Notes under the pieces: model-generated | What the model saw: the letters and a program-made list of their open reading frames with translations, nothing else | What the model was told of the DNA's origin: nothing | Databases searched by the model: none | IMG/VR virus record: IMGVR_UViG_3300025121_000011 | Span: 186,001-250,000 of that record | Strand: one strand, 5' to 3' | Length of the DNA stretch: 64,000 nucleotides | Shown: positions 11,600-43,546 of the stretch, in pieces | Numbering within the stretch: the stretch's first letter is position 1 | Layout: each line of letters starts with the position of its first letter | Made by a program: the position numbers and the translations under genes

Positions 11600-11609
11600 T
11601 TGAGGATAA

Positions 11610-23756: not shown

Positions 23757-24092
23757 ATGGGAGGAATTCCGATATCCTATTTTCACGATATGGTTACAGA
23801 ACTTAAAATGAGTTTGGAATATACTTATGATGATTCTTGGTATGGTAATGTGGTATACAGAGGGTATTCTTATAGATTTCCAGAAGGAAATGTTACTTTA
23901 GCGGTGGTTCCATATCACTCATATTATTTTATGCCACCAAGTTATATTAACTTTTTTTCTGGTGGTCGATTTTACAGACCAGGTCCTATATCTCCAAGAG
24001 AGGCGGCAGAAATTTTGTTAGATCATAAGATCCCAATTTATAATTATTTGGATTTTTTTAATTCTGATGTTTATGTTGATGGAGATATTTAA
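23757..24092 (+). CDS. Hypothetical protein with C-terminal IYNYLDFF motif
   Basis: GAGG RBS; ISPREAAEILLDHKIPIYNYLDFFN. Confidence 0.55.
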   Translation: MGGIPISYFHDMVTELKMSLEYTYDDSWYGNVVYRGYSYRFPEGNVTLAVVPYHSYYFMPPSYINFFSGGRFYRPGPISPREAAEILLDHKIPIYNYLDFFNSDVYVDGDI

Positions 24093-27762: not shown

Positions 27763-28045
27763 ATATACTTTTGAATGTGATAAATGTGATTTTAATGATA
27801 TTAAGACTTTTAGTATTTCTGATTTTTTGATATATAAAGAAGAGAAAAAAGAATGTCCAGAATGTAATGCTGGCGTATTATCTCATAAGCTGGGGAAAAT
27901 TAGAAATGAAGTTGATAAAAGTTCTTTAGAAATAATGGATGATATAAGAATAGATGTACAGAAGACAATTAAAAAGATAGAAGCTGGAGATCAAAGGACT
28001 ATTGAGTCCATCTATGGCGATAAACCTAACCCATATAAGGAGTGA
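27755..28045 (+). CDS. FmdB-like zinc-ribbon protein
   Basis: MPKYTFECDKCD...CPEC. Confidence 0.7.
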   Translation: MPKYTFECDKCDFNDIKTFSISDFLIYKEEKKECPECNAGVLSHKLGKIRNEVDKSSLEIMDDIRIDVQKTIKKIEAGDQRTIESIYGDKPNPYKE

Positions 28046-29952
28046 ATATGGCGGATACCAACCTAATGGACTTGCTTCAAAGTCATATTGAAAAGAAATC
28101 AGAGTTGTCTTGGACTGGAACCTTAAAAGAGTACGTCCAAATGGTAGTTGAAAATCCCGGATTATATAAAAATGCTCATCAAAGAGTTTTAGAAATGATT
28201 GAGTCTCATGGCATAGAAAAAGATGCAGATGGTAATATAACTGGATATACTTTTTTCAAAGATGATTTATTTGGTATTGACACTCCTATTGAACAGATAA
28301 TGTCTTATTTGCGTGCTGCCGCAGCCGGAAGCGAAGTAGGAAGAAGAATTCTGTTATTATTTGGTCCAACATCTTCTGGAAAATCACAATTAGCAATTTT
28401 ATTAAAGAGAGGACTGGAACAATATTCTAAAACAGATGCTGGAGCAATTTATGAACTAGTAGATTCTCCAATGCACGAAGAACCATTAATAGCAGTTCCA
28501 CAAGAATTAAGACCAATGTTTAAAGAACGTTATGGAATAAATATACAAGGCGAATTAAGTCCATTAACAGCTCTTCTTCTTAAAGAAAAATATAATGGTG
28601 ATTTTCTAAAGATGCCGGTTAGAAGAACGACAATCTCCGAACGAGATAGAACTTGTATAGGAACTTTTGTCCCATCTGATAAGAAAAGTCAAGATATTTC
28701 AGAATTAGTTGGTTCACTAGACTTGAGCACTATAGGAACTTATGGATGCGAATCTGACCCAAGAGCTTATAGATTTGATGGAGAGTTGAATGTTGCGAAT
28801 CGTGGTATCATGGAATTCGTAGAAATGTTAAAGGTAGATCAAAAGTTCTTATATGTTTTGTTGACATTGGCACAAGAGAAAAATATTAAGACTGGAAGAT
28901 TTCCACTGATATATGCAGATGAATTTATTCTATCGCACAGTAATGAGACGGAATACAATAGATTCTTAGCTAAAGATGAAATGGAAGCACTTCACGATAG
29001 AACAATTGTTGTTAGAGTTCCATATAATCTGCAAGTAGAAGAAGAAATTAAAATTTATCAAAAGTTGATAGATCAAGCAGACTTCAAGAAATGTCATATT
29101 GCACCACACACTTTACGCTGTGCGGCTATGTTAGCTGTTTTATCTAGACTAAAGAACTCCAATAATCAGAGTTTATCTCCACTTAAAAAGATGCATCTTT
29201 ATAACGGAGAAGATGTAGAAGGATTTACTGCCGCAGAAGCTAGCAAATTTAAGAGTGAATTTCCATCAGAAGGTATGACCGGACTTTCTCCGCGATATGT
29301 TATCAATCGATTATCTGCGGAATTAGCAAATGGAAAAGAGTTTGTTACTCCTATTGATATTATTAGGTCATTACGTGACGGATTAGAATCCAATCCTAAA
29401 GTTAATGCTCAGGAGACTGCTCGATTAGAAGATCTTTTAACATTGATCATTGAAGAATATAATAAAATGGCAAGAAATGATGTGCAAAAGGCATTCTTTG
29501 TAAACTTTGATTCTGAAATAGGTGCTTTGCTTAAGAATTATTTAGATCAAGTTGAAGCCTTTTTAGATGGAGCAAAATTAGAAGATGCCTGGGGTAAAAA
29601 GGTTCCTCCTGACGAAAGATTAATGCGATCCATCGAAGAGAAGGTTCAGATCTCCGAAAGCGGGAAAACGTCCTTTAGACAAGAAATTTATAGAAAGATG
29701 TTAAAATCTCAAAAAGATCATGGAGAATATCGTTATCAAGATCATCCAAGACTTAAAGAGGCTTTAGAGAAGCAGCTTTTCGAGGAGCGTAAGGACACTA
29801 TTAGACTTACAATAAGTTCTCGCAACCCAGACAAAGAAGAGCTGAAGAGAATTAATGGTGTTATAAGTATTCTATGTGAAAGGCATGGATATATTGTTGA
29901 ATCTGCTAATCAGCTACTTAGGTATGTAGGCTCATTAATGGCTCGCAACTAA
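28042..29952 (+). CDS. prkA: PrkA/YeaG family AAA+ ATPase (annotated serine protein kinase)
   Basis: DLFGID, LLLFGPTSSGKS, SPMHEEPL, QDISELVGS, DPRAYRFDGELNVANRGIMEFVEMLK, EALHDR, GLSPRY, DERLMRSIEE, HGY. Confidence 0.93.
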   Translation: MNMADTNLMDLLQSHIEKKSELSWTGTLKEYVQMVVENPGLYKNAHQRVLEMIESHGIEKDADGNITGYTFFKDDLFGIDTPIEQIMSYLRAAAAGSEVGRRILLLFGPTSSGKSQLAILLKRGLEQYSKTDAGAIYELVDSPMHEEPLIAVPQELRPMFKERYGINIQGELSPLTALLLKEKYNGDFLKMPVRRTTISERDRTCIGTFVPSDKKSQDISELVGSLDLSTIGTYGCESDPRAYRFDGELNVANRGIMEFVEMLKVDQKFLYVLLTLAQEKNIKTGRFPLIYADEFILSHSNETEYNRFLAKDEMEALHDRTIVVRVPYNLQVEEEIKIYQKLIDQADFKKCHIAPHTLRCAAMLAVLSRLKNSNNQSLSPLKKMHLYNGEDVEGFTAAEASKFKSEFPSEGMTGLSPRYVINRLSAELANGKEFVTPIDIIRSLRDGLESNPKVNAQETARLEDLLTLIIEEYNKMARNDVQKAFFVNFDSEIGALLKNYLDQVEAFLDGAKLEDAWGKKVPPDERLMRSIEEKVQISESGKTSFRQEIYRKMLKSQKDHGEYRYQDHPRLKEALEKQLFEERKDTIRLTISSRNPDKEELKRINGVISILCERHGYIVESANQLLRYVGSLMARN

Positions 29953-29963
29953 GGGAGTGGCTT

Positions 29964-31913
29964 TTGGATAAAAAATACAAAGATGCGCTATGGTTGAGTA
30001 AAACCTATTTAGATGATAGACAATCTGCGGAGACTATAGCGCATTTCTGCGGAGTCTCAAGCCAGACTATAAGATATTTTATTAATAAATATAATTTACG
30101 TGATGAAAGAGTTAAAATAGATAACGACTTAAAGGAAAAGTTTTTATTTAAACTTAAAAGTCTCTATATAGATGAGAATCTCTCTGTAAGAGAGATCTCC
30201 TGCTTGTTAGAACAAAATGAAGGCACCATAATGTCTATTTTGGCTAAAAACAATATTCAAAAAAGCTTGAATATTCGTCACGAAAAAGCTAAAGAAGCTA
30301 GGGCAAAAACACTTATTAAAAAGTATGGAGTAAATCACGTTAGTAAGATTCCTGGTATAAAAGAGAAAATTGAAGCTACTAACTTAGCAAGATATGGTCA
30401 TTCTAATGTATTAAAATCCTTGGAAATTAGAGAAAAGATTAAAGCTACAAATCTTGAAAGGTATGGTGTAGAAACCCCACTTGAATTGAAAGAATTTCGT
30501 GACAAGTCTAATAAAACGTGTCTAGAAAAATATGGAGAAATATATCCTCAACGGCTTAGTTGCATAAAAGATAAAACATCCAAAACTAATTTAGAACGAT
30601 ATGGTTTTGATAATCCAATGAAAGTTGAAGAATTTGCAAATAAGCAGAAAGAGTCAGTATTTAAAAATTATGGAGTGGATCATCCGCTTCAAAGTATGGA
30701 GATCTATTCGAAGTTATGTGAATATAATCTTGAAAAGTTTGGAGTGGACAACGTTTTAAAGTTAAAAGAAACAAGAGATAAATCTAATGCAACTAAACTA
30801 TCCAGGTACGGAACAATACATCCGTTACAAAATGAGAATATTCTAAATAAAGTAAAGAATACTAATTTAGAACGTTATGGTACAAAATGGTCGATTCAAA
30901 ATAAAGAGATTCGTTCAAAAGGAAGAGAAGCTTCTATTTCAAATGGATTATTTACAATCTATCATGGGAAAACTGCTCATGAATGGGCGAACGAGTATGA
31001 CATACCAATGGTTGGCTTCTATAAGTGGATTGGCAATAATCCATTGTCATCGAGAGAGCAGATTATCTCGTATCTGGAAGGATTCGAAAGACATAAAACA
31101 GATATAGAGAATATTATAGAAGAGAAATTTGGTTTTGATAAGTTTAATAAAATTTTTGACAAGTCTATGAATTATAGACCAGATTTTAAATTAACTAACT
31201 CAATAGCTCTTAATGTGGATGGCCTGTATTGGCATTCAGAGCTAACTAAAGATAAATCATATCACTTTGAAATGAGGTCTAAGTATGAAGCTGCTGGTCT
31301 TAGAATTTTACAATTCAGAGAAGATGAAATTTATCAGAAGCTAGATATAGTTGAGTCAATGATTAATAACGTGCTGCACAAAAACACATCTAAAATAGGT
31401 GCTAGAAAATGTTCTATACAGCTTGTCAAAAATTCAGAAGCTTCAAAATTCTTAGAAAAAAATCACATAAAGGGAGCAAAACACGCTAAGCATATTGGTT
31501 TGTATTATAATGATGAATTGTTATCGGTAATGTCCTATAAAACAAATTCAAATTTAACATGCAAGATCGAGAGATTTTGCACAAAATTAGGAACTGTGGT
31601 GTCTGGCTCATTCTCTAGACTTCTTGGTTTTTTGATTAAGAATAACGAAATAGCAATTATTCATTACTGGGTTGATCTGCGATATGGAAGTGGAAAGTTT
31701 TTGCAGCAATTTGGATTTGTACATGCCAAGGACACGCTTGGTTGGAACTGGACAGATAAAGTAAATACCTATAATAGACTAAGGTGTAGAGCTAATATGG
31801 ATAAGAGAGGGTTATCTCAAGCAAAACATGCTGAAGAATTAAAATGGTTTAAAATATATGATGCAGGACAACGTTTATATATTTTAAATAATAAAACAAA
31901 TTTAGGAGATTGA
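29964..31913 (+). mobile_element. Hef-like putative homing endonuclease, copy 2
   Basis: TTG start behind AAGGGAG; about 10 TNL(E/A)(R/K)YG-type repeats; YRPDF...NVDGLYWHSE...FREDE; YWVDLRYG...IYDAGQRLY. Confidence 0.75.
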
Positions 31914-31919
31914 CATAAA

Positions 31920-32918
31920 ATGAAAATTACTAGAATAAGTGAAAATGAGAAACAATTTACTGATAATAGCCCTATGAATGAGCTTGATCAGCCTTTCCCT
32001 ACAAAAGTAGTGGAAGAAGATGAGGAGATTAATAATGCCCCGTTATTATACAATAGTTTTAAAGTATCTCCACTAAAAGTAAATAGAGTGCAAGCTTCTA
32101 GGATTGTTGATGGAGAGATTATAGATTATAAAGATTTCAAACCCCAAGCTAAGCTTATCATGGGAGTTTTATATAATCCGAATATTGTTCCTGTAGCTTC
32201 AGGAAGTATGTTTCAAATTTTGGGAGTTGAAAGCAAAGAATGCCAAGCTAAAGTTCCGCTTCTTTTATCATTTGATGTACTTGAAAAAAGCAAACCAATT
32301 GCGATTCAATCAGTTGAATTTGCTGTTCAAACGGAACCAAATTTTCTGGAAGAAATTTCACGTACATATTTTGGTACATATTTTGGATCTAAATCTATTA
32401 TATGTGCCGCAGATATTGTTTCCGATATGTTTCATATTGCTTTTAAGTCATCATTTAATTTTGCCATATATGAATTGGAAAAAAGTTACGTAAATCATTT
32501 TGGCCGATATCCATCGGCAATAATGTTAATTTCGCGAAATACGGACCCGCCATTCTTTTTTCTTGACACTATAAGTATGATTAAAGGGGGGACCTCTTAT
32601 GAAAGATCATATGGATTTGATGGATTTATAGTTGCTCTTGATGAAGAAGGTGAAGAGTTAATAACTCAATATTTATTGAAAGATAGCATTTGCAAAACTA
32701 GAGCATTTGCGACAAGTGAGTCAATAAAAGACTTTGCTACTCCAATTGAAAAAAATATGTTTCATGAAGACTATAATTCTGTTGAGTCCATATATAAGAT
32801 TATGGATAGTAAGCTAAATATTGAAATTCTTAAAGAAAAGAAAGAAAAGTTAAATGATATTTTTAATCCTAGCAAAGTGATAATAGCTGGAAAAAACGAA
32901 ACATTGTTTTCTGACTGA
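31920..32918 (+). CDS. Hypothetical protein
   Basis: 332-aa ORF with AGGAG RBS inside the prkA-yeaH interval. Confidence 0.6.
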   Translation: MKITRISENEKQFTDNSPMNELDQPFPTKVVEEDEEINNAPLLYNSFKVSPLKVNRVQASRIVDGEIIDYKDFKPQAKLIMGVLYNPNIVPVASGSMFQILGVESKECQAKVPLLLSFDVLEKSKPIAIQSVEFAVQTEPNFLEEISRTYFGTYFGSKSIICAADIVSDMFHIAFKSSFNFAIYELEKSYVNHFGRYPSAIMLISRNTDPPFFFLDTISMIKGGTSYERSYGFDGFIVALDEEGEELITQYLLKDSICKTRAFATSESIKDFATPIEKNMFHEDYNSVESIYKIMDSKLNIEILKEKKEKLNDIFNPSKVIIAGKNETLFSD

Positions 32919-32928
32919 CGAAGAAATA

Positions 32929-33000
32929 ATGTCACAACAGCATGATGCTGGTCAACGATTATATATATATATATTTTTGATTAATAATGCTAAACAATAA
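32929..33000 (+). pseudogene. Chimeric 23-codon remnant (yeaH start fused to a Hef-like endonuclease C-terminus)
   Basis: MSQQHDAGQRLYIYIFLINNAKQ*; first 18 nt match the yeaH start 17/18, followed by DAGQRLY as at the end of endonuclease copy 2. Confidence 0.6.
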
Positions 33001-33020
33001 ATATAAAGTAGAGGTTTAAA

Positions 33021-33140
33021 ATGAGTAAAACAATCAAAGTTGATTTTGAAAACTCTAGGTTAACTAATATTATTAGATATCAATCTAAATCGGTCAATCA
33101 ACTTCTAGGATACGTTAGCTCTTTAACGGTTAGAGACTAA
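33021..33140 (+). CDS. Small hypothetical protein (39 aa), not in the ORF track
   Basis: AGAGGT RBS, ATG 33021, TAA abutting the next ATG at 33141. Confidence 0.45.
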   Translation: MSKTIKVDFENSRLTNIIRYQSKSVNQLLGYVSSLTVRD

Positions 33141-33434
33141 ATGAATTATAATAACACCGTACAATGTGCTTCTTGGGAAGAATTTATATCAGAAATTAAA
33201 AATAGGCGAGCATTAAAACATAGTTTGGATTTTCAAGATTTTCCAATGCGACTTTCATTTGGATTTGAAGATGAAGAATTGGGAGAACTGGTTATGGCAA
33301 GCATTAGAGCTATTTCTCCTATAATGGCCTCTATGTCTGGTAAAGAAAAAAATATCTTTACATCTCAAATCGAAGACTTTAGTACCGGTGAAAATATCTT
33401 GCATATTTTATATCCTGAATTATGTGAAGATTAA
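33141..33434 (+). CDS. Hypothetical protein
   Basis: 97-aa coupled ORF. Confidence 0.5.
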   Translation: MNYNNTVQCASWEEFISEIKNRRALKHSLDFQDFPMRLSFGFEDEELGELVMASIRAISPIMASMSGKEKNIFTSQIEDFSTGENILHILYPELCED

Positions 33435-33435
33435 A

Positions 33436-33828
33436 ATGGCAAATAATTTTTTTAAAATAATAAAGATATGTACATTAGTTGGGAAAAAGTATCCAGAATT
33501 TGCTGATACTTTCCACATTATTAAAGATGAAGTACCCGATGAATATAGTATTCCATTTCATTACTTAGAAACAGATAAGTTTGCTAAAATAGAAGATGAA
33601 GAAAATATTATATTTAACACTGGTGACACAAAATTAGATGTTAAAACTCCATTTTTATTATCGGATAACCCCAAGATTCTCATTAGAGAGGTTTCAGAAA
33701 AAATTATATTTTTAATCGAAGAATATGTTAAGTATTATAATCATCTGCCATATCAAATAGCAATTTCTGTGCAAAATAATATGTATGGAGTTTTTGCAGT
33801 AGGTGATTTTAATTTAAAGAGAATATAA
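33436..33828 (+). CDS. Hypothetical protein
   Basis: In-frame ATG 33436 just after the upstream stop (track start 33388). Confidence 0.5.
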   Translation: MANNFFKIIKICTLVGKKYPEFADTFHIIKDEVPDEYSIPFHYLETDKFAKIEDEENIIFNTGDTKLDVKTPFLLSDNPKILIREVSEKIIFLIEEYVKYYNHLPYQIAISVQNNMYGVFAVGDFNLKRI

Positions 33829-33839
33829 ATGGAGTAATT

Positions 33840-35036
33840 ATGTCACAACAGTATGATAGCTTATCTGATATTTGGAAGCTTAAGGGTCGTGGGAAACGCG
33901 ATTCTGAGCGACACAAAGAATTGGTTAAACGTGCCATTCGAGAAAATGGAAGGGACCTGATCACAGAATACAATATCATACGTTCTGATGGAAGTAAAAA
34001 AGTAAAAGTCCCAATTCGCTTTTTAGATAAATATCATTTTAAATATGGAAAATTAAAAGATGATAAAGGAGTTGGACAAGGATTAGATGGTAAGCCTGGA
34101 GATAAATATAAAGTTGGAAGCCCAGCACCCGCCGGAGGCTCTGGACAAGCAGGCAATGGAGATGGAGAACGTTATTATGACGCAGAGGTTTCAATTGATG
34201 AAATTGTCGATATTCTGATGCAAGAACTTAATCTTCCTTGGCTTGAACCAAAAGGTACAGCACAGATAGAATCAGAAGAAGAGCAGTTTGACTCTATTGA
34301 AAAGAAAGGCATTATGCCCAACTTAGATATTAAACGATCTTTGATTCAAAATATTATTCGACACGCTGCAAAAGGTGACCCAAAAGTTGGTCAATTTCAT
34401 AAAAATGATCTTCGTTTTAAAGAATGGGAAAATGTAAAAGAGTATCATTCTAATGCAGCCATTTACCTCTTAATGGATCGCTCTGGTTCTATGACTCTCG
34501 AAAAGACTCATATTGCTAAAAGTTTTTTCTTTTGGATGGTTCAATTTTTAAAGAAGCGATATAAAAAAATAGATATCATTTTTATAGCGCACGACACTAA
34601 GGCTTGGATTGAAACAGAGGAAAACTTCTTTGCTATAAATTCCGGAGGCGGCACTCAATGCAGTTCAGCATTTGCGTTGGCGCACGACCATATAATCACA
34701 CACCATCCTGCGGACCGATGGAATAATTATGTTATTGAATTCAGCGATGGAGATAACTGGGGTAACGATAATCTATTGTGTCTAGATTATGTTAAGAAAC
34801 TATTGCCATTATGCCGGGCCATCGGTTATGGAGAAATTATTCCAGATTCAGATAAGGAAAATGCTTGGTTTAATAAATCTAATTTATTATCTACTGTATT
34901 AGAAAAAAATATTAAACGAACAAGATATGTAACATTAAGATTGCAAAAACGAGATGATGTTTTTGATGCACTAAAGAAATTCTTTAATATTGATGGAGCA
35001 TCAGATAAAAATCTAAGAGATGAGAATGGAAAATGA
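33840..35036 (+). CDS. yhbH: YeaH/YhbH (DUF444) vWA-domain protein
   Basis: DSERHKELV, Gly-rich GQGLDGKPGD linker, ELNLPWLEPK, LMDRSGSM MIDAS, KSFFFWMVQFL, GGGTQCSSA, FSDGDNW. Confidence 0.92.
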   Translation: MSQQYDSLSDIWKLKGRGKRDSERHKELVKRAIRENGRDLITEYNIIRSDGSKKVKVPIRFLDKYHFKYGKLKDDKGVGQGLDGKPGDKYKVGSPAPAGGSGQAGNGDGERYYDAEVSIDEIVDILMQELNLPWLEPKGTAQIESEEEQFDSIEKKGIMPNLDIKRSLIQNIIRHAAKGDPKVGQFHKNDLRFKEWENVKEYHSNAAIYLLMDRSGSMTLEKTHIAKSFFFWMVQFLKKRYKKIDIIFIAHDTKAWIETEENFFAINSGGGTQCSSAFALAHDHIITHHPADRWNNYVIEFSDGDNWGNDNLLCLDYVKKLLPLCRAIGYGEIIPDSDKENAWFNKSNLLSTVLEKNIKRTRYVTLRLQKRDDVFDALKKFFNIDGASDKNLRDENGK

Positions 35037-36630
35037 AAAACCAAAATATCAAGATGAAATTTGGCTTAAAACTGAGATTTTAATATCTAAAAAAACTGCT
35101 ACAAAAATAGCAAAAGAAAACGGATGGTCTGCTTCTACGGTTTTAAAATGGCAAAGGCATTTTGGAATTATAGAAGAATATAAGAATCACAAATGGCTCC
35201 AACATCAGTTTTTAGATCTTAATAAAACAGCTTTAGAGATTTCAAGAGAACAACATTGTTCTTCAATCACAATAAATAAATACCTCTGTAAGTTTAATAT
35301 TAAAAAATCTTATGACGCAGCAATACAGGCTAAGATTCTTTCAACAAAAAGAACTTGTATCGATAGATATCAAGTAGATAATCCTATGAAGTTGGCAAAT
35401 ATCAAACAAAGAGTAAAGATAACTTCTAAAGATAAATATGGTGAAGAACATTTTTTAAAAACAAATACAGGCAGAGAGAAACTAAAAGAATCTATTAAAC
35501 AAAAATATGGTTGTGATTATATAACTCAAACACCAGAAGTAAAATTAAAAATCAAAGAAACAGTAATGAATAAGTACGGTGTTTGTAATGTTTCTATGGT
35601 GCCTGAGATCGCAAAAAAGAAAAGACAGACGCTTATCTGTTTGCATGGATTTAATCCGGCAACAGAACAGACGGGACTCTGTAGAGTTATTAATGGTCTT
35701 ACAACCAAAGAATTAGCTGAGAAGCATAATGTACCATATTCTTCTTTGAATTATATTTTTAGAACATTTCATATAGAAACTGAAGAATCTTTAGAAGCAT
35801 TCTTATCAGATTACAAGATTGGACCTAATAATTTAGAAAAGTATTTAGAAGATTTAATAGATCTTCCACATTGGAATATTGCGCCTGAAAATGTTAAATT
35901 ATCATATAGACCAGATTTTAGATTAAGTAATTCTATTTATTTAAATGTTGATGGGTTATATTGGCACTCTGATAAATTTAAAGATAAAAATTATCATTAT
36001 AAAATGAGAGAAGAGTTTGAATCCGCAGGCTTGCAAATCGTACAATTTAGGGCAGACGAGATACATGCAAAGCCAAAAATCATTAAATCTATTATAAATA
36101 ATAAGGCAGGAAAGTCGCAAAAGATCTCCGCTAGAAAAACCATCATTAAAAAAGTGTCTCATGAAAATGCTATGATTTTTCTAAATGAGAGTCACATAAA
36201 AGGATATAAAGCTGCAAAACATATTGGATTATATTTTGAAAATATTTTGGTCATGATTTGTTCTTATAAGATTATAAATAAAATTTTGAAAATTGAAAGA
36301 CTTGCAACATTACTTGATCATTTAGTTGTTGGAGGAGCATCTAAATTGTTTAAATTCCTTGAACGTAATTTAAAATTTGATATGATTCATTATTGGGTTG
36401 ATTTACGATACGGAAAAGGAGATTTTTTAAGTTCTATGGGGTTCTCTAAGAACAAAGATGTTCTTGGATGGGAGTGGACTGACTATGTTAAAACATATAA
36501 TCGTTTACAATGTAGAGCCAATATGGATGATAGAGGTTTATCACAATCAGAACACGCTTGTGAGTTGGGATGGGTCAAAATTTACGATGCAGGACAAAGA
36601 TTATGGATCAAACAAAACAATCTTCGATGA
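35026..36630 (+). mobile_element. Hef-like putative homing endonuclease, copy 3
   Basis: Tandem N-terminal HTH, xxKYG repeats, YRPDF...NVDGLYWHS...FRADE, YWVDLRYG...IYDAGQRLW; start overlaps the yeaH stop. Confidence 0.75.
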
Positions 36631-37043
36631 TTGATAAGATATATACCACTGGATTATTCACCCCAATATCATTAGACAAAGGAGAGTTTTCGCTTAATGG
36701 AACTGATTATATTGCAGTTGCAAGAGGAGATCATGTTAATTGGATTGTGAAGAAAGTTATTCATGTTCGGCCCGAAATCTCACATGGAAGCTTCGCCAGA
36801 GCAGATAGTAATGCATCAAGGGTTAAAATTCGATATGTCTCAGTTTCCTTTGAAGAAGTATTTGATAATTGTTCAGATCGAATTAAAAAAGAATTGATTT
36901 ATCATTTTGATATTTTTAATGATAATAAAAAGAACAATTATTTAGAAACACCTGTTTTTGAAATACAATCAAATCCACAAATTCATCTATCGGATATTAA
37001 AATACGTAGATTCAAAATGTTAGAATATATTTGGAGAAAATAA
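36627..37043 (+). CDS. Hypothetical protein with FEEVF...LIYHFDIF motif
   Basis: ATG 36627 overlaps the endonuclease stop (ATGA); VSFEEVFDNCSDRIKKELIYHFDIFN. Confidence 0.55.
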   Translation: MIDKIYTTGLFTPISLDKGEFSLNGTDYIAVARGDHVNWIVKKVIHVRPEISHGSFARADSNASRVKIRYVSVSFEEVFDNCSDRIKKELIYHFDIFNDNKKNNYLETPVFEIQSNPQIHLSDIKIRRFKMLEYIWRK

Positions 37044-37044
37044 T

Positions 37045-39699
37045 ATGAATGATGTTCTGGAAAGAAGAATTAAAATGTTAGAAGAGTTAGCAACTAAAGA
37101 ATTAGGATTAGACTTCTTTCCAATTATGTGGGAAATAGTTCCTGAAGAGGTAATGTTAGAAGTGATGTGCTATGGACTACCTTCAAGAATTAGGCATTGG
37201 TCTTATGGGCAAAGTTATGAGTATCAAAAGACGCAGGGAGAAATGGGAGCATCTAAAGTTTATGAATTGGTTTTAAATAATGATCCCGCATTCGCCTTTT
37301 TGTTAGATTCTAACAGTAATATTGCAAATTCAATGGTCGCGGCACATGTTTTGGGTCATGTGCATTTCTTTAAGAATAATTATTTATTTAAACAAACCGA
37401 CCGTAAAATGGTTTATCATGCTGCTGAGCGAGCATCAAGAGTAGAGGAGTATATTACTCAATTCGGATTAGAAGAAGTAGAAAAAACCATGAATATTGCT
37501 TTAGCTATGGATAAGAATATTAATTGGAAAAGAGGAATAAATAGAACACAATATGGTGATAGGAAAAGTGTCTGGCAAAAGAGAAAGGTACAAGAGTTTG
37601 ATGATATGTTTGGACTAAATAAAAAACCCGAATTAGAGCGAGTCATTGAAAATGATATATTTCCACCAAGTCCAGAGGAGGATTTGCTGTGGTTCTTCGC
37701 TAATTATGCGCGTTTAGAGCCCTGGCAAAAAGATATTTTTGAAATTATTAGAGAAGAGTCATTTTACTTCTATCCGCAATATAATACACAAATAATAAAC
37801 GAAGGTTTTGCCTGTGTTTCCGGAGATACGCTTGTTCCAACTGAACAAGGTATTCTACAGATTAAGGATATAGTTTTAGGTGATGCATTATATGTTGATG
37901 ATAATGAAAAGAGGAGGCAGATTGTTGGAAAAAAGATAATTGGAGAGAAAGAGTGCAAAAAGATTATAACTAAACGAGGCTATGAGTTATGTGGTGCAAA
38001 TAATCATCGTGTATTATGTGATAATAAGTGGAGGCAGCTAGATGAGTTAGAAGTAGGGCAAAGAATAGATATATCTTTAAATAACGAGATTTGGTCAAAT
38101 AATTACGTACAAGTTGATTATAAACCCAAAAGAGCGAAGAAAACTTTACTAGATATATCAAGACTCGCAGGAGTTGCTCCAGTCACTATTGCTAGAAGGA
38201 GGATGGGTTTAAATGTTAAAAATCTAAATCATATAGATTCTTTAATTAAGATTTATGAGGCTGAACAAAATGATTTAACTTTATGCAGCTCATATAGCTT
38301 TGATAGGCGAAAAATATTTTTAATTCCAGATCATATTGATGAGAAATTTGGAAGGTTTTTGGGCTTATTGATTGGTGATGGACATATATCCAGAGCAAGC
38401 AGATCTTTTGGATTTACATCTGGTGATTTAGAATTAGCTGAAGAATTTAGGACCTTAATTTGTGATTTATTTGCAACAAAGTCTGTGCTCAAGAAGGATG
38501 AAAATCGATATAGAATCATCTGTCATTCAGAGGGAATATCTGATTTTTTAATAAATTATATAGGATGCAAGCAAGGAGTTTCTGCGAGAAAAAAAGATGT
38601 GCCATCGATAATTTTACAATCTCCAAAGTCCGTTATGTCATCGTTTATTAGTGGATTATTCGATGCAGATGGATGTGCTCATAAAAATGGAATTACATTC
38701 GTAACTGCTAGTAAGCAGATGGCGAAATTAATTCAAACTATTTTAGTTAATTATAATATTCTTTCTAGTAAATATTACAGACAAGATGAGACATATGCTA
38801 TTAATATATTTGGATTATCAGCAAAGAAATTTTCTGAACAAATTGGATTCGGATTAAACAGAAAACAAAATATTTTAAATGCTTTTATACAGAATAAAAA
38901 ATGGTTTAAGAAAGAAAAATCATATGATGAGATTAAACATATAGAATCGCTTACTGAAATAGTTTATGATATTTCTGTTGAAGAGTCTAATAGATATGTG
39001 GCAAATGGATTAATTAATCACAACTCATTTTTTCACGCAGAATTAATGTATTTGCTTTCGGAAAAAGAACTTAGTTCAACTGAATATTTAGAATTTGTTA
39101 AGATTCATGAGCGCGTTATTCAACCAGGAAATAATAAGTTAAATATCAATCCATATTTTTTGGGATTTACGATTTTAAATGATATTAGAGCAAAATGGGA
39201 TAAGAAGCATAAAGATGGAGAATCGGAACTTACCGGAATACAAAAAATTCTAAAAGTAGTAGAATTAGAGGATGATATTTCATTTTTAAGAAATTATCTG
39301 ACACAGGAAATTGTTGATAAACTTAAAATGTTCGTCTATATTGAAGAATTTGATCACGCAAAAAATAAATTTATCGAAATTAAAAGTACCCGAGTAGAGG
39401 ACGTAGTAGAATATATAGCGAAGGATATTTACAACTATAGGGCCCCAATTATTTCTATTAATGCAGCCACTCCAACTGGAATTGAATTAGTACATCAAAG
39501 TAGAGAAGTTGGAACACTAGACCCAAAGCATTTAGAAAAGGTAATGGGATACATATATGAAATATGGCCAGGAATTGTAGATTTGGAAACGATAGATAAT
39601 CATGGTGAAATAATTAATTTTACTTTTGATGAATTTGGAATGAGTTTCCAAGACGATGAAAAAACGGGAAAACATCGTATAACTTTTAAAAAGAAATAA
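37045..39699 (+). CDS. spoVR: SpoVR/YcgB family protein, intein-containing
   Basis: GLPSRIRHWSYG, YELVLN, AHVLGHVHFFKNN, EDLLWF, IIREESFYFYPQ, INEGFA|SFFH, NPYFLG, DISFLRNYLT. Confidence 0.92.
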   Translation: MNDVLERRIKMLEELATKELGLDFFPIMWEIVPEEVMLEVMCYGLPSRIRHWSYGQSYEYQKTQGEMGASKVYELVLNNDPAFAFLLDSNSNIANSMVAAHVLGHVHFFKNNYLFKQTDRKMVYHAAERASRVEEYITQFGLEEVEKTMNIALAMDKNINWKRGINRTQYGDRKSVWQKRKVQEFDDMFGLNKKPELERVIENDIFPPSPEEDLLWFFANYARLEPWQKDIFEIIREESFYFYPQYNTQIINEGFACVSGDTLVPTEQGILQIKDIVLGDALYVDDNEKRRQIVGKKIIGEKECKKIITKRGYELCGANNHRVLCDNKWRQLDELEVGQRIDISLNNEIWSNNYVQVDYKPKRAKKTLLDISRLAGVAPVTIARRRMGLNVKNLNHIDSLIKIYEAEQNDLTLCSSYSFDRRKIFLIPDHIDEKFGRFLGLLIGDGHISRASRSFGFTSGDLELAEEFRTLICDLFATKSVLKKDENRYRIICHSEGISDFLINYIGCKQGVSARKKDVPSIILQSPKSVMSSFISGLFDADGCAHKNGITFVTASKQMAKLIQTILVNYNILSSKYYRQDETYAINIFGLSAKKFSEQIGFGLNRKQNILNAFIQNKKWFKKEKSYDEIKHIESLTEIVYDISVEESNRYVANGLINHNSFFHAELMYLLSEKELSSTEYLEFVKIHERVIQPGNNKLNINPYFLGFTILNDIRAKWDKKHKDGESELTGIQKILKVVELEDDISFLRNYLTQEIVDKLKMFVYIEEFDHAKNKFIEIKSTRVEDVVEYIAKDIYNYRAPIISINAATPTGIELVHQSREVGTLDPKHLEKVMGYIYEIWPGIVDLETIDNHGEIINFTFDEFGMSFQDDEKTGKHRITFKKK
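37813..39024 (+). mobile_element. Intein (404 aa) with LAGLIDADG endonuclease in spoVR
   Basis: Begins CVSGDT, ends VYDISVEESNRYVANGLINHN followed by Ser; FLGLLIGDG and FISGLFDADG motifs. Confidence 0.92.
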
Positions 39700-39709
39700 G
39701 GGAGTTGCG

Positions 39710-40264
39710 ATGAATACTGAAGTTACAGAAGGACAAGTATCTGTTAAAAAAGAGCCGTACATCGATTATTCTTTTCAATTTAATTTAGCAAGAGAAAGAA
39801 CGGAAAAGAAAATTTTTAGTTATATGTGCGATCTTGCTAAGAAGTTATTAGAAACCAAAAGAAAATTAGGGCTCTTAGTTGTTTTAGGGACATTCGATAG
39901 GTATTCGGATTATTCTGTTCCTGGTATGCGTCAATTGGGAAAGAATACTATTCAGAAGTATATAAATGTTGCTTTTGGTCAATTCGAAACAGATATAGAG
40001 AAAATATTCGAATCAAAAGAAGACGGAGCTATTATTATAAATCATAATGGTCAGATTTTGGGCACCGGAATTTATCTTACAGTAGATCACCCCTCTTTGG
40101 AGATACCAGAGGGCGCCGGAACAAGACATATTTCTGCTGCTTCTTTTTCTACTAGAGATGATGTAATATCTACATTTACTCTCTCAGAAGAGACCCTGAC
40201 TGTTCGATTATGGAAAGATGGAGCCTTTACGGAACAATATGGGCCAGAAGAAGATGCAGTCTGA
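39710..40264 (+). CDS. Stand-alone diadenylate cyclase (DisA_N/DAC domain)
   Basis: EDGAIII (DGA), GAGTRHISAA (RHR-like), TLSEE; no DisA linker/HhH domain and no transmembrane segment. Confidence 0.8.
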   Translation: MNTEVTEGQVSVKKEPYIDYSFQFNLARERTEKKIFSYMCDLAKKLLETKRKLGLLVVLGTFDRYSDYSVPGMRQLGKNTIQKYINVAFGQFETDIEKIFESKEDGAIIINHNGQILGTGIYLTVDHPSLEIPEGAGTRHISAASFSTRDDVISTFTLSEETLTVRLWKDGAFTEQYGPEEDAV

Positions 40265-40800
40265 TGTCCTTGCTTAGTAATGAAGAAATTCATAAGATTT
40301 TCTTAGATAATCAAGACTCTTTTAATAATCATTGGAGGCAAGATTTATTTATAAATCTCTGTCCTTTGGTTATTAGTAGAATAAAAAAATTTAAAACTTT
40401 TTCTTATGTTCAAGATCTAGAGCAAGAGTTCAAATTAGCTTTATGGTCTGCAATTAAAAGTTTTGACCACCATAAACATTTTGACTTTTACCGTTGGGTG
40501 AATTGGTACTTTGCCAATTCCAGTAGAAATTTTCAAAAAAATTATAATAAGATTAACTCTATTAATCTTGATGGTAATGATATAAAAATGCCAGATGATT
40601 TATTATTCGCAGAAGAGATGTTGAATTGTCAACAGCTTTCGTTAAGAGAAAAGTATATCATCCAAAAAATATTTTTTGAAGACCAATCATTAGAAGTAAT
40701 TAGTAAAGAATTAAATCTCTCAATAGAGAGAGTATGGATACTTAAAAATAAAGCAATTAAAAAAATGAAAAATATGGAGTATGATTATAATGAATGTTAA
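40264..40800 (+). CDS. RNA polymerase sigma factor (sigma70 family, regions 2 and 4 only)
   Basis: DLEQEFKLALWSAIKSFD...FYRW; LSLREKYII...SLEVISKELNLSIERV..LKNKAIKKMK; ATG 40264 overlaps the DAC stop (TGATG). Confidence 0.8.
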   Translation: MSLLSNEEIHKIFLDNQDSFNNHWRQDLFINLCPLVISRIKKFKTFSYVQDLEQEFKLALWSAIKSFDHHKHFDFYRWVNWYFANSSRNFQKNYNKINSINLDGNDIKMPDDLLFAEEMLNCQQLSLREKYIIQKIFFEDQSLEVISKELNLSIERVWILKNKAIKKMKNMEYDYNEC

Positions 40801-43546
40801 TGGAAGTATTCTGAGTGATATTATTATGCATAATAAATATGCTAGATGGAATGAGAATTTACTCAGAAGAGAGACTTACTCAGAATGTGTTGATAGAAAT
40901 AAACTGATGCATTTAGAAAAATTTCCAGAGCTTAAAGATGAAATAGAGGCGGCGTATACCTTTGTGTATGATAAAGTTGTGTTGCCATCTATGAGAAGCA
41001 TGCAATTTGCTGGTAAGCCTATTAAGATAGCCCCAAATCGTATGTTTAATTGTTTTGCGAAAGAGACAAAATTTGTTACATCTAAAGGGACTAAATCTTT
41101 TGAAGAATTTTCTGATGGTGATCATGTAGAAGTTGTAACGCATACAGGTACATTTAAACAAGCAGTTGTTAGATCTTATGGAGAACAAGAACTGTTTGAA
41201 ACAATTTTAATCAGAGGTCGTAATTCTCAAACGGTATATGCTACAAAAGATCATAGATGGATTAAATATGATGGAGAGCAAACAACTAGATTACAAAAAA
41301 AGGATGTTTTATATCCAACTCCAAAGCTTGAGTTATTTAATTATGCTACTTCAGAACCATTAGAAAAGTTATATTGGTGTTATGGCTATGCCTATGGGAA
41401 TGGCACCATTATAGAAAATGAAACTTCTCAACATTATATTGTTAATTTGCATAGTGTAAATTCTAAGAAATACGCCTCTCGATTTCAAGAAATGGGATTT
41501 GAAACAAGTAATCTTAAGTCACATAATGATTTTTTAGCTTGCATTGGAAATTATCATAAGCTTATATCAAATATAGATGCCAATTCTAAAGACTTAATAA
41601 AAGCATTTTTTACCGGATATTTAAATTCATCTGGAATTAGAAATACAGATTTTAATAACAATGATTCTGTGTCTAAATATAAACAAATTTCAACCACTGA
41701 TTTGGAGCATGCGCAGTTTATAGAAAAGTGTGCAGAAATTTCTGGATATTTTATATTATCTAAGAAAAAAATCATTAAGAATAAAATTATAACTTATCGT
41801 TATACTTTAACAAATAATATTGGAAGCAGTATATCGACAGCTTATTCTGTAAAAAATATTAAAAAAACTGATAGAAAAGAAGAAGTATGGTGTTTAGAGG
41901 TTGAAGAAGATCATAGTTTTATATTGTCTGGTGGAATAGTTACTGGAAATTGCGTTTTTGCTCCAGTTGATGATTATCGTATTTTTGGTGAGGTTATGTT
42001 TTTGCTTCTTGGAGGAAGTGGAGTCGGTTATAGTGTTCAAAATCATCATATAGATAATCTTCCTGAAATTAGAAAGCCTATTAAAACCAGAAGATATTTA
42101 GTAGGTGACTCCATTGAGGGGTGGGCTGAGTCGGTTAAACTTCTCATTAAATCATATTTTCTTAATAGCTCTAAACCTGATTTTGATTTTTCTGATATTA
42201 GATCAAAGGGTGCAAGGTTGATTACATCAGGTGGTAAGGCTCCAGGTCCAGCTCCATTGCAAAAGTGTTTATTTTTAATTGAGCAATTATTAAATTCCAA
42301 AACAGATGGCGATAAGCTTAAGCCAATAGATGCTCATGATATAATGTGTTATATAGCTGACGCTGTGCTCGCCGGAGGGATTAGGCGATCTGCAATGATT
42401 GCGTTATTCTCTATCGATGATATAGAAATGTTAACTTGTAAATCCGGAAATTGGTTTGAAAAGCATCCTCATCGTGGAAGAGCAAACAACTCTGCTGTAG
42501 TTTTACGTTCTAGAGTTACAAAAGAATCTTTTGGAAAACTATTTGAATTCATGAAAGAAAACAAAACTGGAGAGCCTGCTATATTTTTAACAAATGATAA
42601 AGACATGGGTCTTAATCCATGTGGAGAGGCTTCGCTTAGAGCATTTTCTGGTTGTAATTTAACAGAGATAAATGCTTCTTTAATTAACTCTCAAGAGGAA
42701 TTAAATGCTGCGGCAAAAGCGGCTTCATTTATAGGAACTCTTCAAGCTTCTTATACGAGATTTCATTATTTACGTCCAATTTGGGAACGAGGATTTAAAA
42801 AAGATTCTTTAATTGGAGTAGGTATTACTGGTTTAGCAAATGAAAATTTCTTAAAATTAGATTTAACTAATGCTGCTAAAATTGTAGTAAATGAAAATAA
42901 AAAGATATCAGAAACAATAGGAATTAAACAAGCTGCTCGAACAACTTTAGTTAAGCCTAGTGGGACGACAGCTCTTTTACTTGGAACAAGTTCTGGTATA
43001 CATGATTGGTATGCAAAATATTATATACGTCGTATTAAGTTATTAAAAAATGAAGAGATATATCATTATCTTGCTAGAGAATTACCGGAACTAATGGAAG
43101 ATGATTGGGAGAAGCCACACATACAAGCCATATTATCTATTCCTATGAAAGCACCAGAAGGCGCCATTTTAAGAGAAGATACAACACCAATCGCTCTTTT
43201 GGAAAGAGTTAAAGATGTTTATAAGCGTTGGATATTTCCTGGACATATTACTGGTAGCAATACTCATGCAATTAGCTGCACCGTTAATGTTAAAGATAAT
43301 GAATGGGATGAAGTAGAAAATTGGATGTGGACTAATAAAGATAGTTATAACTGCATTTCTGTTTTTCCACATTTTGGTGGTTCATATAAACAACTTCCAT
43401 TTGAAGAAATTACTGAAGAATGCTACTACAAAATGAGTACTAATATACACAGGATTGATTTAACAAAGATATTGGAAATGGCAGACGATACAAATCTTAC
43501 CGGAGAAGCAGCATGTGCTGGTGGTGCATGTGAACTAACATTTTAA
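40781..43546 (+). CDS. nrdJ: Class II (adenosylcobalamin-dependent) ribonucleotide reductase, intein-containing
   Basis: PSMRSMQFAG, RMFN|C, LLGGSGVGYSV, DSIEGWA, SGGKAPGP, AGGIRRSA, NPCGE, VKPSGT, C-terminal ACAGGAC. Confidence 0.9.
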   Translation: MIIMNVNGSILSDIIMHNKYARWNENLLRRETYSECVDRNKLMHLEKFPELKDEIEAAYTFVYDKVVLPSMRSMQFAGKPIKIAPNRMFNCFAKETKFVTSKGTKSFEEFSDGDHVEVVTHTGTFKQAVVRSYGEQELFETILIRGRNSQTVYATKDHRWIKYDGEQTTRLQKKDVLYPTPKLELFNYATSEPLEKLYWCYGYAYGNGTIIENETSQHYIVNLHSVNSKKYASRFQEMGFETSNLKSHNDFLACIGNYHKLISNIDANSKDLIKAFFTGYLNSSGIRNTDFNNNDSVSKYKQISTTDLEHAQFIEKCAEISGYFILSKKKIIKNKIITYRYTLTNNIGSSISTAYSVKNIKKTDRKEEVWCLEVEEDHSFILSGGIVTGNCVFAPVDDYRIFGEVMFLLLGGSGVGYSVQNHHIDNLPEIRKPIKTRRYLVGDSIEGWAESVKLLIKSYFLNSSKPDFDFSDIRSKGARLITSGGKAPGPAPLQKCLFLIEQLLNSKTDGDKLKPIDAHDIMCYIADAVLAGGIRRSAMIALFSIDDIEMLTCKSGNWFEKHPHRGRANNSAVVLRSRVTKESFGKLFEFMKENKTGEPAIFLTNDKDMGLNPCGEASLRAFSGCNLTEINASLINSQEELNAAAKAASFIGTLQASYTRFHYLRPIWERGFKKDSLIGVGITGLANENFLKLDLTNAAKIVVNENKKISETIGIKQAARTTLVKPSGTTALLLGTSSGIHDWYAKYYIRRIKLLKNEEIYHYLARELPELMEDDWEKPHIQAILSIPMKAPEGAILREDTTPIALLERVKDVYKRWIFPGHITGSNTHAISCTVNVKDNEWDEVENWMWTNKDSYNCISVFPHFGGSYKQLPFEEITEECYYKMSTNIHRIDLTKILEMADDTNLTGEAACAGGACELTF
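41051..41950 (+). mobile_element. Intein (300 aa) in nrdJ with an apparently degenerate endonuclease
   Basis: Begins CFAKET, ends VWCLEVEEDHSFILSGGIVTGN followed by Cys; LAGLIDADG-position blocks read YGYAYGNG and FTGYLNSSG (acidic residues absent). Confidence 0.88.

Follow-up and report, generated by a model that had tools for sequence, protein, structure and literature searches.

A stretch of 64,000 nucleotides from the IMG/VR virus record IMGVR_UViG_3300025121_000011 (referred to below as the window) carries a block of genes for PrkA, DUF444/YeaH, SpoVR (together referred to as the triad), a diadenylate cyclase (DAC) and a sigma factor, in this order and all on the plus strand. The block comes from an uncultured lineage of marine jumbo phages whose triad lies between a zinc-ribbon (Zn-ribbon) gene and a DAC–sigma pair. 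Its DAC belongs to a predicted family of minimal phage-encoded cyclases found in at least three genomic backgrounds, and natural variants exist that lack either the triad or the sigma gene. Our preferred reading, to which we give a probability of about one half, is that the region is a conserved part of a larger gene array for replication and nucleotide metabolism, with three separable host-takeover functions that are inherited side by side, and not an obligate machine. The parts of the block appear to be separable because one relative has the DAC–sigma pair without the triad, DACs of the family occur on contigs that lack the triad, triads occur without a DAC and the sigma gene has been lost several times.

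Two homing endonucleases, four extra open reading frames (ORFs) and one LAGLIDADG intein interrupt the block (Table 1). Its packing is operon-like: the DAC gene begins after a gap of 10 nt past the SpoVR stop and the ATG of the sigma gene (40264) shares one base with the DAC stop, as an earlier note on this DNA had described. That note also listed full-length prkA, yeaH and spoVR genes, ordered on one strand and with intact Walker A and metal-ion-dependent adhesion site (MIDAS) motifs, and our analysis agrees. No terminator-like site falls in any intergenic space of the block, all such sites being located inside genes. A promoter scan returned 91 sites against 91.7 expected and, the DNA being rich in AT, is uninformative. 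Within the block, a single intergenic gap is of appreciable size (32919–33140, just before orf97 and orf146); it contains two promoter-like matches of 10/12 each.

Conservation of the gene order

Relatives were gathered by tblastn and by iterative hidden Markov model searches; individual loci are denoted by L numbers. All 19 IMG/VR loci with a DAC of the block show the order DnaB…Zn-ribbon–PrkA–DUF444–SpoVR–DAC–(sigma)–ribonucleotide reductase (RNR)–orf113–PhoH2, which is seen only in part in two fragments at contig ends. The most distant of the 19 (L159, with a DAC identity of 43%) has this order too, and Tara, NCBI assemblies and Logan contributed additional loci in which it recurs. It is also kept in L161 and L163, which form a deeper sister sub-lineage (PrkA 56% and DAC 42% identical) and in which two small ORFs part SpoVR from the DAC. 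The Zn-ribbon gene is directly upstream of prkA in all relatives and overlaps the prkA start. The variant without the triad, L165, reads DnaB…Zn-ribbon–orf175–DAC–sigma–RNR (with an intein)…PhoH2, with nothing of the triad between the Zn-ribbon gene and orf175. The latter is homologous to an ORF upstream of the DAC in L161 and L163.

Cellular loci were sampled by scanning GTDB with a PrkA alignment, and the best 80 loci were inspected with flanks of up to 10 kb. DUF444 and SpoVR adjoin prkA in about 60 of the 80. A DAC was found within 10 kb of prkA in none of these 80 loci, either by an iterative search started from the phage DAC or with a broad DAC profile (E ≤ 1). This negative result is probably not the consequence of a narrow profile, because the broad profile detects CdaA, CdaM, CdaS and DisA; the profile of this sensitivity control, run on the PDB, is similar to, but was built separately from, the DAC profile of the local scan. 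The phage triad differs from its cellular counterparts in that its three genes are contiguous, with a Zn-ribbon gene before them and a DAC after them, an arrangement seen in none of the 80 cellular loci, and the earlier note was right, for the sampled GTDB prkA loci, in not recognizing the linkage of triad and DAC from cells. Among viruses, no DAC was found near the triad in about 45 other IMG/VR triad loci or in phiYS40_Isch and LR756511; in the last two, whose flanks were read, no sigma gene adjoins the triad either.

A phage-borne triad is already known at the level of annotation (phiYS40, 2006). PrkA, DUF444 and SpoVR are also clustered in the Thermus phages phiYS40 and TMA, the Ralstonia phage RsoM2USA and the huge phages LR756511, LR756502, LR745206 and LR756504, and their annotations in GenBank phages are 'serine kinase', 'conserved bacterial protein' and 'SpoVR'. 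The PrkAs of GenBank phages are 28–36% identical to that of the window, the gene order in phiYS40 is DUF444–SpoVR–hypothetical–PrkA and these triads are separate acquisitions on the PrkA tree. The triad also occurs in the phages phiLo and MN1 and in the Lalka phages, and is frequent on IMG/VR contigs as long as 578 kb. In a second, unrelated triad group with a PrkA of the other major clade (L042, L043, L048 and L049), PhoH follows SpoVR at a distance of about 1 kb. PhoH is found within 10 kb of prkA in 0 of the 80 cellular loci; this may be due to chance, PhoH being common in marine phages.

Triad proteins

PrkA matches AAA_PrkA (PF08298; E = 1.7e-115, 386 bits) and PrkA_C (PF06798; E = 2.9e-65, 221 bits) over nearly the full length of both profiles, for which the cut-offs are 25 bits. 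The Walker A motif (GPTSSGKS) comprises residues 108–115, with Lys114 invariant in 16 aligned PrkAs. In B. subtilis PrkA, the Walker A lysine (K108) is required for both ATPase and protease activity (PMC9512850). The score against the NCBIfam equivalog PRK15455 is 280.5 bits, below the cut-off of 576; the phage protein is a divergent member of the family and not an equivalog. The DUF444 protein (289 bits) has the MIDAS motif DxSxS as DRSGS at residues 213–217, with GGGT and SDGD further downstream; among the NCBIfam models it comes closest to spore_yhbH, with 356.6 bits (cut-off 468). The SpoVR domain scores 320.7 bits and contains the motifs AHVxGHxxFFKNN and NEG[FW]A[ST]xxH. In an alignment of the SpoVR protein (with the intein removed) with intein-free relatives and a Klebsiella YcgB-type protein, the motif residues are invariant in phage and cellular sequences.

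The same three families make up YeaG (SpdA)–YeaH plus YcgB of E. coli and PrkA–YhbH plus SpoVR of B. subtilis, and the phage proteins keep the Walker A lysine, the MIDAS and the SpoVR motifs. These cellular counterparts, to which the phage copies are 29–55% identical, have been linked to starvation survival, bulk proteolysis and sporulation (PMC13684143, PMC9512850).

In the PrkA tree, all members of the lineage form one clade (support 99) with a deep origin in the YeaG/PrkA half of the family, and a single acquisition of PrkA by the phage lineage is most likely, as judged from this topology. The earlier note had hoped that phylogeny would identify a donor or host; the tree, calculated for PrkA, names neither, because the fork at which the phage clade attaches is deep and unresolved. 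The family as a whole falls into two deeply separated clades (internal branch 4.85). One contains E. coli-type YeaG (represented by a Klebsiella locus) and sequences from Bacillota, Acidobacteriota and Chloroflexota, and the other, to which most of the remaining IMG/VR triads also belong, contains alphaproteobacterial and gammaproteobacterial sequences. The cellular PrkAs closest to the phage PrkA (50–55%) are on contigs of metagenome-assembled genomes (MAGs) from 'bacterium' bins (L062, of 620 kb, L061 and L116), which might be huge phages binned as bacteria.

The ratio of nonsynonymous to synonymous substitution rates (dN/dS) was calculated for a moderately diverged pair of relatives (L150 and L058). 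The values are 0.046 for DUF444, 0.038 for SpoVR, 0.031 for DnaB, 0.053 for RNR and 0.044 for PhoH2, compared with 0.144 for the sigma factor and 0.245 for the Zn-ribbon protein, both of which evolve faster than the triad. Synonymous sites are saturated for PrkA (dN of 0.076) and the DAC (dN of 0.129), as they are between the window and its closest relative (L005/L143), which gives dN only. Where dS can be estimated, a dN/dS of 0.04–0.05 indicates that the triad is constrained like core replication genes such as DnaB and RNR, in keeping with the proposal that intact triad ORFs in spite of the insertions imply selection.

Predicted diadenylate cyclase

The DAC domain (PF02457) retains the DGA, GTRH and SEE motifs, which are invariant in 32 family members. 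The AlphaFold2 model of the protein has a predicted local distance difference test (pLDDT) score of 80 and a predicted template-modelling (pTM) score of 0.76, and the top 50 fold matches in the PDB are all CdaA, CdaM/DacM or DisA (E of ∼4e-7 to 1e-5). The N-terminus is hydrophilic with a single helix (residues 21–48), and the protein has no membrane anchor, sensor or DNA-binding domain. It shares its fold and the DGA, (T)RH and SEE motifs with CdaA/DacA, CdaM, DacZ and DisA. Unlike CdaA and CdaM, it has no transmembrane helices (three such helices are class-specific), and it lacks both the DNA-binding domains of DisA (linker plus helix–hairpin–helix) and the N-terminal domain of DacZ. With 184 residues and RHI in place of RHR, it is ∼23–26% identical to CdaAs of solved structure. 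Scores against the NCBIfam classes are 40.5 bits for DacZ (cut-off 430), 25.9 for CdaM (cut-off 225) and 15.9 for DisA (cut-off 201), and the predicted cyclase fits no curated class (CdaA, DisA, DacZ or CdaM).

A HMMER scan of 1.84 billion representatives returned only 404 proteins at E ≤ 0.001. The best full-length matches are mostly of a short soluble type of 170–215 residues, followed by CdaA-like proteins. The DAC matches no PHROG family, a tblastn search of 50,697 GenBank phage records found none, and no report of a phage-encoded diadenylate cyclase was found in the literature searched. The DAC of the block seems to represent the first family of diadenylate cyclases encoded by phages. Comparison of the block proteins with the PADLOC defence models gave only the intein endonuclease and two marginal matches.

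Short DACs of the block family, 27–38% identical to that of the window by alignment or tblastn, are also present in unrelated phage-like contigs without the triad (L160, L162 and L164). The genomic contexts of the distant DACs were reached through the protein collection; a search of IMG/VR with three single distant DACs found nothing. In L160 (9001–12555) and L164 (7585–9998) the order is DAC–RNase H–DUF2201_N/DUF2201 von Willebrand factor A (vWA)-like metallopeptidase. The DUF2201 gene of L160 is followed directly by a MoxR-type ATPase (AAA_5), with a ClpB-like gene nearby. The DAC of L162 (2474–3046) is accompanied by an M16 peptidase, PhoH2, a ClpB-like AAA+ protein and, ∼8 kb away, a DHH/DHHA1 protein of 338 residues (10727–11743; weak Pfam hits). 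DHH/DHHA1 is the fold family of the phosphodiesterases for cyclic di-AMP (c-di-AMP) and pApA, and L162 could hold a phage synthesis–degradation pair. The recurring proximity of phage DACs to AAA+, vWA and peptidase genes is intriguing, if anecdotal.

PanS of the PanDA and Panoptoo systems (2026 preprints) is likewise a minimal stand-alone DAC (∼150–200 residues) with no sensor domain and a part in phage–host conflict. PanS, however, is encoded by the host and paired with a 2TM-beta effector, whereas the DAC described here is encoded by a phage and has SpoVR and a sigma factor as neighbours. Run on the PDB, the broad DAC profile finds CdaA at E = 1e-15, CdaM, CdaS and DisA at 5e-7 to 1e-5 and PanS at 0.057. 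Assignment of the phage DAC to PanDA/Panoptoo was rejected, as the two-gene operon with a 2TM-beta effector is not present and the similarity to PanS is marginal (E = 0.057).

Sigma factor

The sigma factor matches sigma-70 region 4 with 33.4 bits (cut-off 24.1) and region 2 with 20.4 bits, just under the cut-off of 24; it also matches PHROG sigma families (E = 1.8e-9) and scores 38.1 bits against the extracytoplasmic function (ECF) superfamily model (cut-off 42.9). The start at ATG 40264 is likelier than one at the upstream ATG 40210, because the relatives align only from residue 19 onwards. Small size, a sigma-70 region 4, the match to region 2 just under the cut-off and the matches to PHROG sigma families liken it to other phage-encoded sigma factors, from which it differs in that it belongs to no curated subfamily, is not SigF/G-like and is dispensable in several close relatives.

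Sporulation-like sigma factors are encoded by some phages, and the earlier note had placed the present one beside them. This assignment was rejected: the scores are 33.8 bits against the SigB/F/G model (cut-off 234), 30.8–33.7 bits against SigG models (cut-offs 372–457) and 16.2 bits against SigF (cut-off 321), and the protein falls into no sporulation subfamily.

An intact sigma gene is present in about nine of some 15 distinct genomes of the lineage; a remnant is left in L010 and the gene is missing from L006, L007, L147, L151 and L154. Joint conservation of the DAC and the sigma factor with the triad, as had been proposed, therefore holds for the DAC, the adjacency of which is lineage-wide, and fails for the sigma factor, which has been lost in about six of the ∼15 genomes. 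Even the co-conservation of triad and DAC may be mere inherited order, because DnaB, RNR and PhoH2 are equally syntenic in the same genomes.

Possible functions of the block

In the preferred reading, Zn-ribbon–PrkA–DUF444–SpoVR would be a captured bacterial starvation module, YeaG/YeaH/YcgB (PrkA/YhbH/SpoVR). E. coli YeaG, renamed SpdA, is required for a starvation-induced and largely nonspecific degradation of cytoplasmic proteins, which yields the amino acids and ATP with which new proteins are made (PMC13684143). By analogy with YeaG/SpdA and with B. subtilis PrkA, the phage triad would most likely drive ATP-dependent bulk turnover of host cytoplasmic proteins, feeding amino acids and energy into phage synthesis in nutrient-poor cells. 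A phage of nutrient-limited marine cells would gain from triggering this degradation at will, beside its nucleotide-salvage genes and PhoH2. The DAC resembles a CdaA-like catalytic domain and would be an unregulated source of c-di-AMP or a related cyclic dinucleotide; its product would override c-di-AMP signalling of the host or top up the dinucleotide pool. In bacteria, c-di-AMP affects potassium and osmolyte transport as well as central metabolism. A raised level could alter these processes and could also hold guard systems that monitor a decoy nucleotide silent. The sigma factor would be an accessory transcription factor, lost in several members of the lineage.

Several points weigh against this reading. 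L165 is a single contig of 26 kb, and its triad could be elsewhere in the genome. The third residue of the RHR motif of the DAC is an invariant isoleucine (RHI) in the marine clade; the same position varies in the wider short-DAC family (R, K, L, I, M or H), and one active PanS likewise departs from RHR (2026 preprint). The cited work on proteolysis deleted yeaG alone, and roles of YeaH and SpoVR in proteolysis were not established there. All of the phage proteins score under the NCBIfam equivalog cut-offs, so that equal function is an assumption. Finally, a functional link would likewise be expected to give a tight and long-lived adjacency of triad and DAC, such as is kept here down to 42% DAC identity.

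Such a link was the central proposal of the earlier note, in which the block is one integrated machine: the product of the DAC regulates a PrkA–YeaH–SpoVR complex, or the reverse, and the sigma factor completes a switch that steers the starvation physiology of the host. Wherever a genome of the lineage has both the triad and the DAC they are kept adjacent, and this holds for two deep sub-lineages; together with the tight packing of the genes and the lack of the linkage in the 80 cellular loci, it agrees with this proposal. The triad-less contigs may be read in the same way, with the DAC of L160 and L164 only one gene (RNase H) away from a vWA-like metallopeptidase, the MoxR-type ATPase next to it in L160 and ClpB-like AAA+ genes nearby in L160 and L162 suggesting a recurring theme of protein remodelling. 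We nevertheless regard an integrated machine as unlikely. The flanking DnaB, RNR and PhoH2 genes are as syntenic as the block, so that the adjacency may be historical only; L165 has the DAC and sigma genes without the triad; the triad runs without a linked DAC in many phages and in all of the sampled bacteria; in L161 and L163, SpoVR and the DAC have two other ORFs between them; and the sigma gene is optional. What stands of the proposal is the conserved order with its DAC adjacency, and not the coupling of all the parts.

A role of the DAC in counter-defence appears similarly doubtful. According to this explanation, the phage enzyme supplies a c-di-AMP-like dinucleotide and thereby silences guards of the PanDA/Panoptoo or Panoptes-like type that fire when a decoy is depleted. 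Two preprints of August 2026 describe minimal DACs (PanS) that constitutively make 3'3'-c-di-AMP or cUA, which represses the effector PanE, and phage sponges that sequester the PanS signal and so trigger the system. The phage DAC is minimal, soluble and free of a sensor domain, as is PanS, and it is present in unrelated phage-like contigs independently of the triad, as would be expected for a free-standing anti-defence gene. It is, however, nearer to CdaA than to PanS by the broad DAC profile (see above), and its position is stably syntenic, unlike that of a gene in a variable island of anti-defence functions. The window yielded no sponge gene, although no search was aimed at sponges.

The remaining functional proposal, that entry into sporulation or persistence is manipulated by the block, whose sigma factor would mimic a sporulation sigma, is improbable to a greater degree. 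The names of the families stem from Bacillus sporulation genetics, the DUF444 protein is nearest to the spore_yhbH model, the nearest UvsW-like helicases are those of Bacillus phages and sporulation-like sigma factors do occur in phages. Against this, the sigma factor scores far below the cut-offs of the SigB/F/G, SigF and SigG models and is dispensable within the lineage, the relatives derive from metagenomes of Tara Oceans and other marine waters and the triad is widespread in non-sporulating phyla. No other feature connects the block with sporulation or dormancy, and neither a role in sporulation nor the steering of dormancy suggested in the earlier note is supported.

Probable viral origin of the contig

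The window is 100% identical to part of the IMG/VR record, which has a length of 335,169 bp. Related contigs of ∼200–420 kb turn up in many samples, including those of Tara Oceans and of other marine water metagenomes. The genes of the window are nearly all on one strand and the GC content is ∼31%. Outside the block, the window encodes a TubZ-like tubulin, a UvsW-like helicase, DnaB with a loader-like ATPase, RNR, a topoisomerase, PhoH2, a thymidine kinase, a dUTPase, a phage lysozyme and sugar-nucleotide and glycosyltransferase proteins; a protein of 1249 residues bears a tail-fibre collar motif. The UvsW-like helicase matches 1108 GenBank phage records, with Bacillus phages nearest. No ribosomal or housekeeping operons were seen. 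No gene for capsid, portal or terminase turned up in the 64 kb of the window or the adjoining 10 kb, the large ORF at 14812–18429 has no match among GenBank phages, and the only near-identical DNA in GenBank phages is a single match of 52 nt, which is at chance level.

Membership of IMG/VR together with these phage-type genes and features (the UvsW-like helicase, TubZ, the lysozyme, the tail-fibre-like ORF and the dense homing endonucleases and inteins) makes it very likely that the contig is viral and not cellular, as had been assumed for it. That it is a cellular or megaplasmid contig mis-called as viral, with ordinary host genes, is hardly credible: several relatives are deposited within MAG assemblies and virion genes were not found in the range given above, but the recurrence of contigs of this size across many samples, the helicase, lysozyme, TubZ and collar-motif genes, the four inteins and three homing endonucleases within 64 kb nearly all on one strand, and the lack of ribosomal or housekeeping operons among the genes seen all argue against it.

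The genes for a group-1 glycosyltransferase (12301–13344) and the TubZ-like tubulin (13322–14773) are separate, overlapping ORFs in the window; in a relative (L058:1-39) the two are called as a single fusion of 837 residues. ARAGORN predicts a tRNA-Ile with the unusual anticodon TAT at 23838–23927, which at 90 nt is long for its class. The mechanically called ORF at 23757–24092 is probably not a gene, because this tRNA lies inside it.

Inteins, homing endonucleases and orphan ORFs

The element that splits SpoVR begins with Cys257, ends with HN660 followed by Ser661 and contains two LAGLIDADG motifs (LGLLIGDGH and GLFDADGC). It is placed exactly within the invariant motif NEG[FW]AS.xH, between the A and the S, and is a predicted intein of the LAGLIDADG class. 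The same site (NEGxA followed by C) is also occupied by an intein in phage L158 and in four MAG loci labelled as Chloroflexota (L072, L098, L103 and L110). Insertions of intein size are present upstream of the NEGxA motif in the SpoVR genes of L152 and L154 and at three sites in the PrkA genes of L152, L098 and L110 (after window residues 215, 264 and 300), two of the three with clear Cys…HN boundaries. SpoVR and PrkA are, on these alignments, putative intein hot-spots. In total, four genes within the 64 kb bear inteins: GDP-mannose dehydratase (3723–5867), SpoVR, RNR and topoisomerase (55451–58951).

The window also has three paralogous DUF7487 homing endonucleases, one upstream of the block (25697–27304) and the two within it; endonucleases of this type sit at differing intergenic sites in different relatives. 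That between prkA and DUF444 is not at its site in L005–L009 and is found at other sites in relatives. The one between DUF444 and SpoVR has a paralogue at the same junction in L007/L158 and L147 and none in L005, L006, L008 and L009. The orphans orf332, orf97 and orf146 accompany the endonuclease in the insertion between prkA and DUF444. A search of 5.8 billion protein clusters for homologues of orf332 retrieved only orf332 itself, which is not present in any relative; among the relatives, orf97 and orf146 are seen only in the identical contigs L003/L004, and orf157 is found in the window contig and in L005 only (43% identity). In L005, the six genes occupy ∼6.2 kb, compared with 12.8 kb in the window. 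Because they are missing from most relatives, the intein, orphan ORFs and endonucleases are probably recent selfish insertions, which would leave the host genes intact.

The features of the block and of its immediate surroundings are listed in Table 1. The Zn-ribbon protein, in addition to the Pfam match given there, scores 22.7 bits against NCBIfam TIGR02605, which is under the cut-off of 31.3.

Table 1. Features in and around the block, with positions in the window
Feature	Position	Strand	Matches and remarks
FmdB-like zinc-ribbon protein, CxxC…CxxC, 96 aa	27755–28045	+	Pfam Zn_ribbon_8, E = 3.4e-4; overlaps prkA start
PrkA/YeaG-family AAA+ protein, 636 aa, GTG start	28042–29952	+	AAA_PrkA and PrkA_C; phrog_22605
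Free-standing homing endonuclease, 649 aa	29964–31913	+	Pfam DUF7487; phrog_3339 and phrog_559, homing/HNH endonuclease
orf332, orphan, in the prkA/DUF444 insertion	31920–32918	+	No Pfam, PHROG or NCBIfam match
orf97, small orphan	33141–33434	+	No family match
orf146, small orphan	33388–33828	+	No family match
DUF444 (YeaH/YhbH) vWA protein, 398 aa	33840–35036	+	Pfam DUF444, E = 7.3e-86; phrog_19072
Second free-standing homing endonuclease, helix–turn–helix and DUF7487, 536 aa	35020–36630	+	phrog_3339
orf157	36570–37043	+	No credible family match
SpoVR/YcgB-family protein, 480-aa extein, split by intein	37045–39699	+	Pfam SpoVR, E = 1.6e-95, in two stretches
Predicted LAGLIDADG intein, 404 aa, SpoVR residues 257–660	37813–39024	+	Intein_splicing and LAGLIDADG_3 domains
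Minimal soluble DAC-domain protein, 184 aa	39710–40264	+	Pfam DAC, 50 bits (cut-off 27)
Small sigma-70-family factor, 178 aa from ATG 40264	40264–40800	+	Sigma70_r4, 33.4 bits; phrog_351/1740
Ribonucleotide reductase, 921 aa, with intein	40781–43546	+	Weak matches to class II RNR insertion domain and RNR barrel domain
PhoH2 (PIN and PhoH)	43942–45264	+	Conserved downstream of the block

Biological implications

PrkA–YeaH–SpoVR genes have been annotated in phages since 2006 and never explained. The role of YeaG in starvation proteolysis (2026; PMC13684143) provides a concrete and testable reason for phages of starved ocean bacteria to carry the module. The finding of the DAC coincides with the demonstration that c-di-AMP serves as a decoy signal in bacterial immunity. 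We tentatively propose, as a possibility that falls well short of an even chance, that phages own a family of minimal soluble DACs, present in at least three unrelated phage-like backgrounds, that floods or tops up the cyclic-dinucleotide pool of the host, either silencing guards of the PanDA, Panoptoo or Panoptes type or seizing c-di-AMP physiology, and that in the marine jumbo lineage acts beside a captured machine for starvation proteolysis. The interest of the region lies mostly in this DAC and in the role of the triad having just become testable. If the proposal is true, a phage that makes the signal itself would represent a new move in the arms race between phages and bacteria or a new route by which host physiology is reprogrammed.

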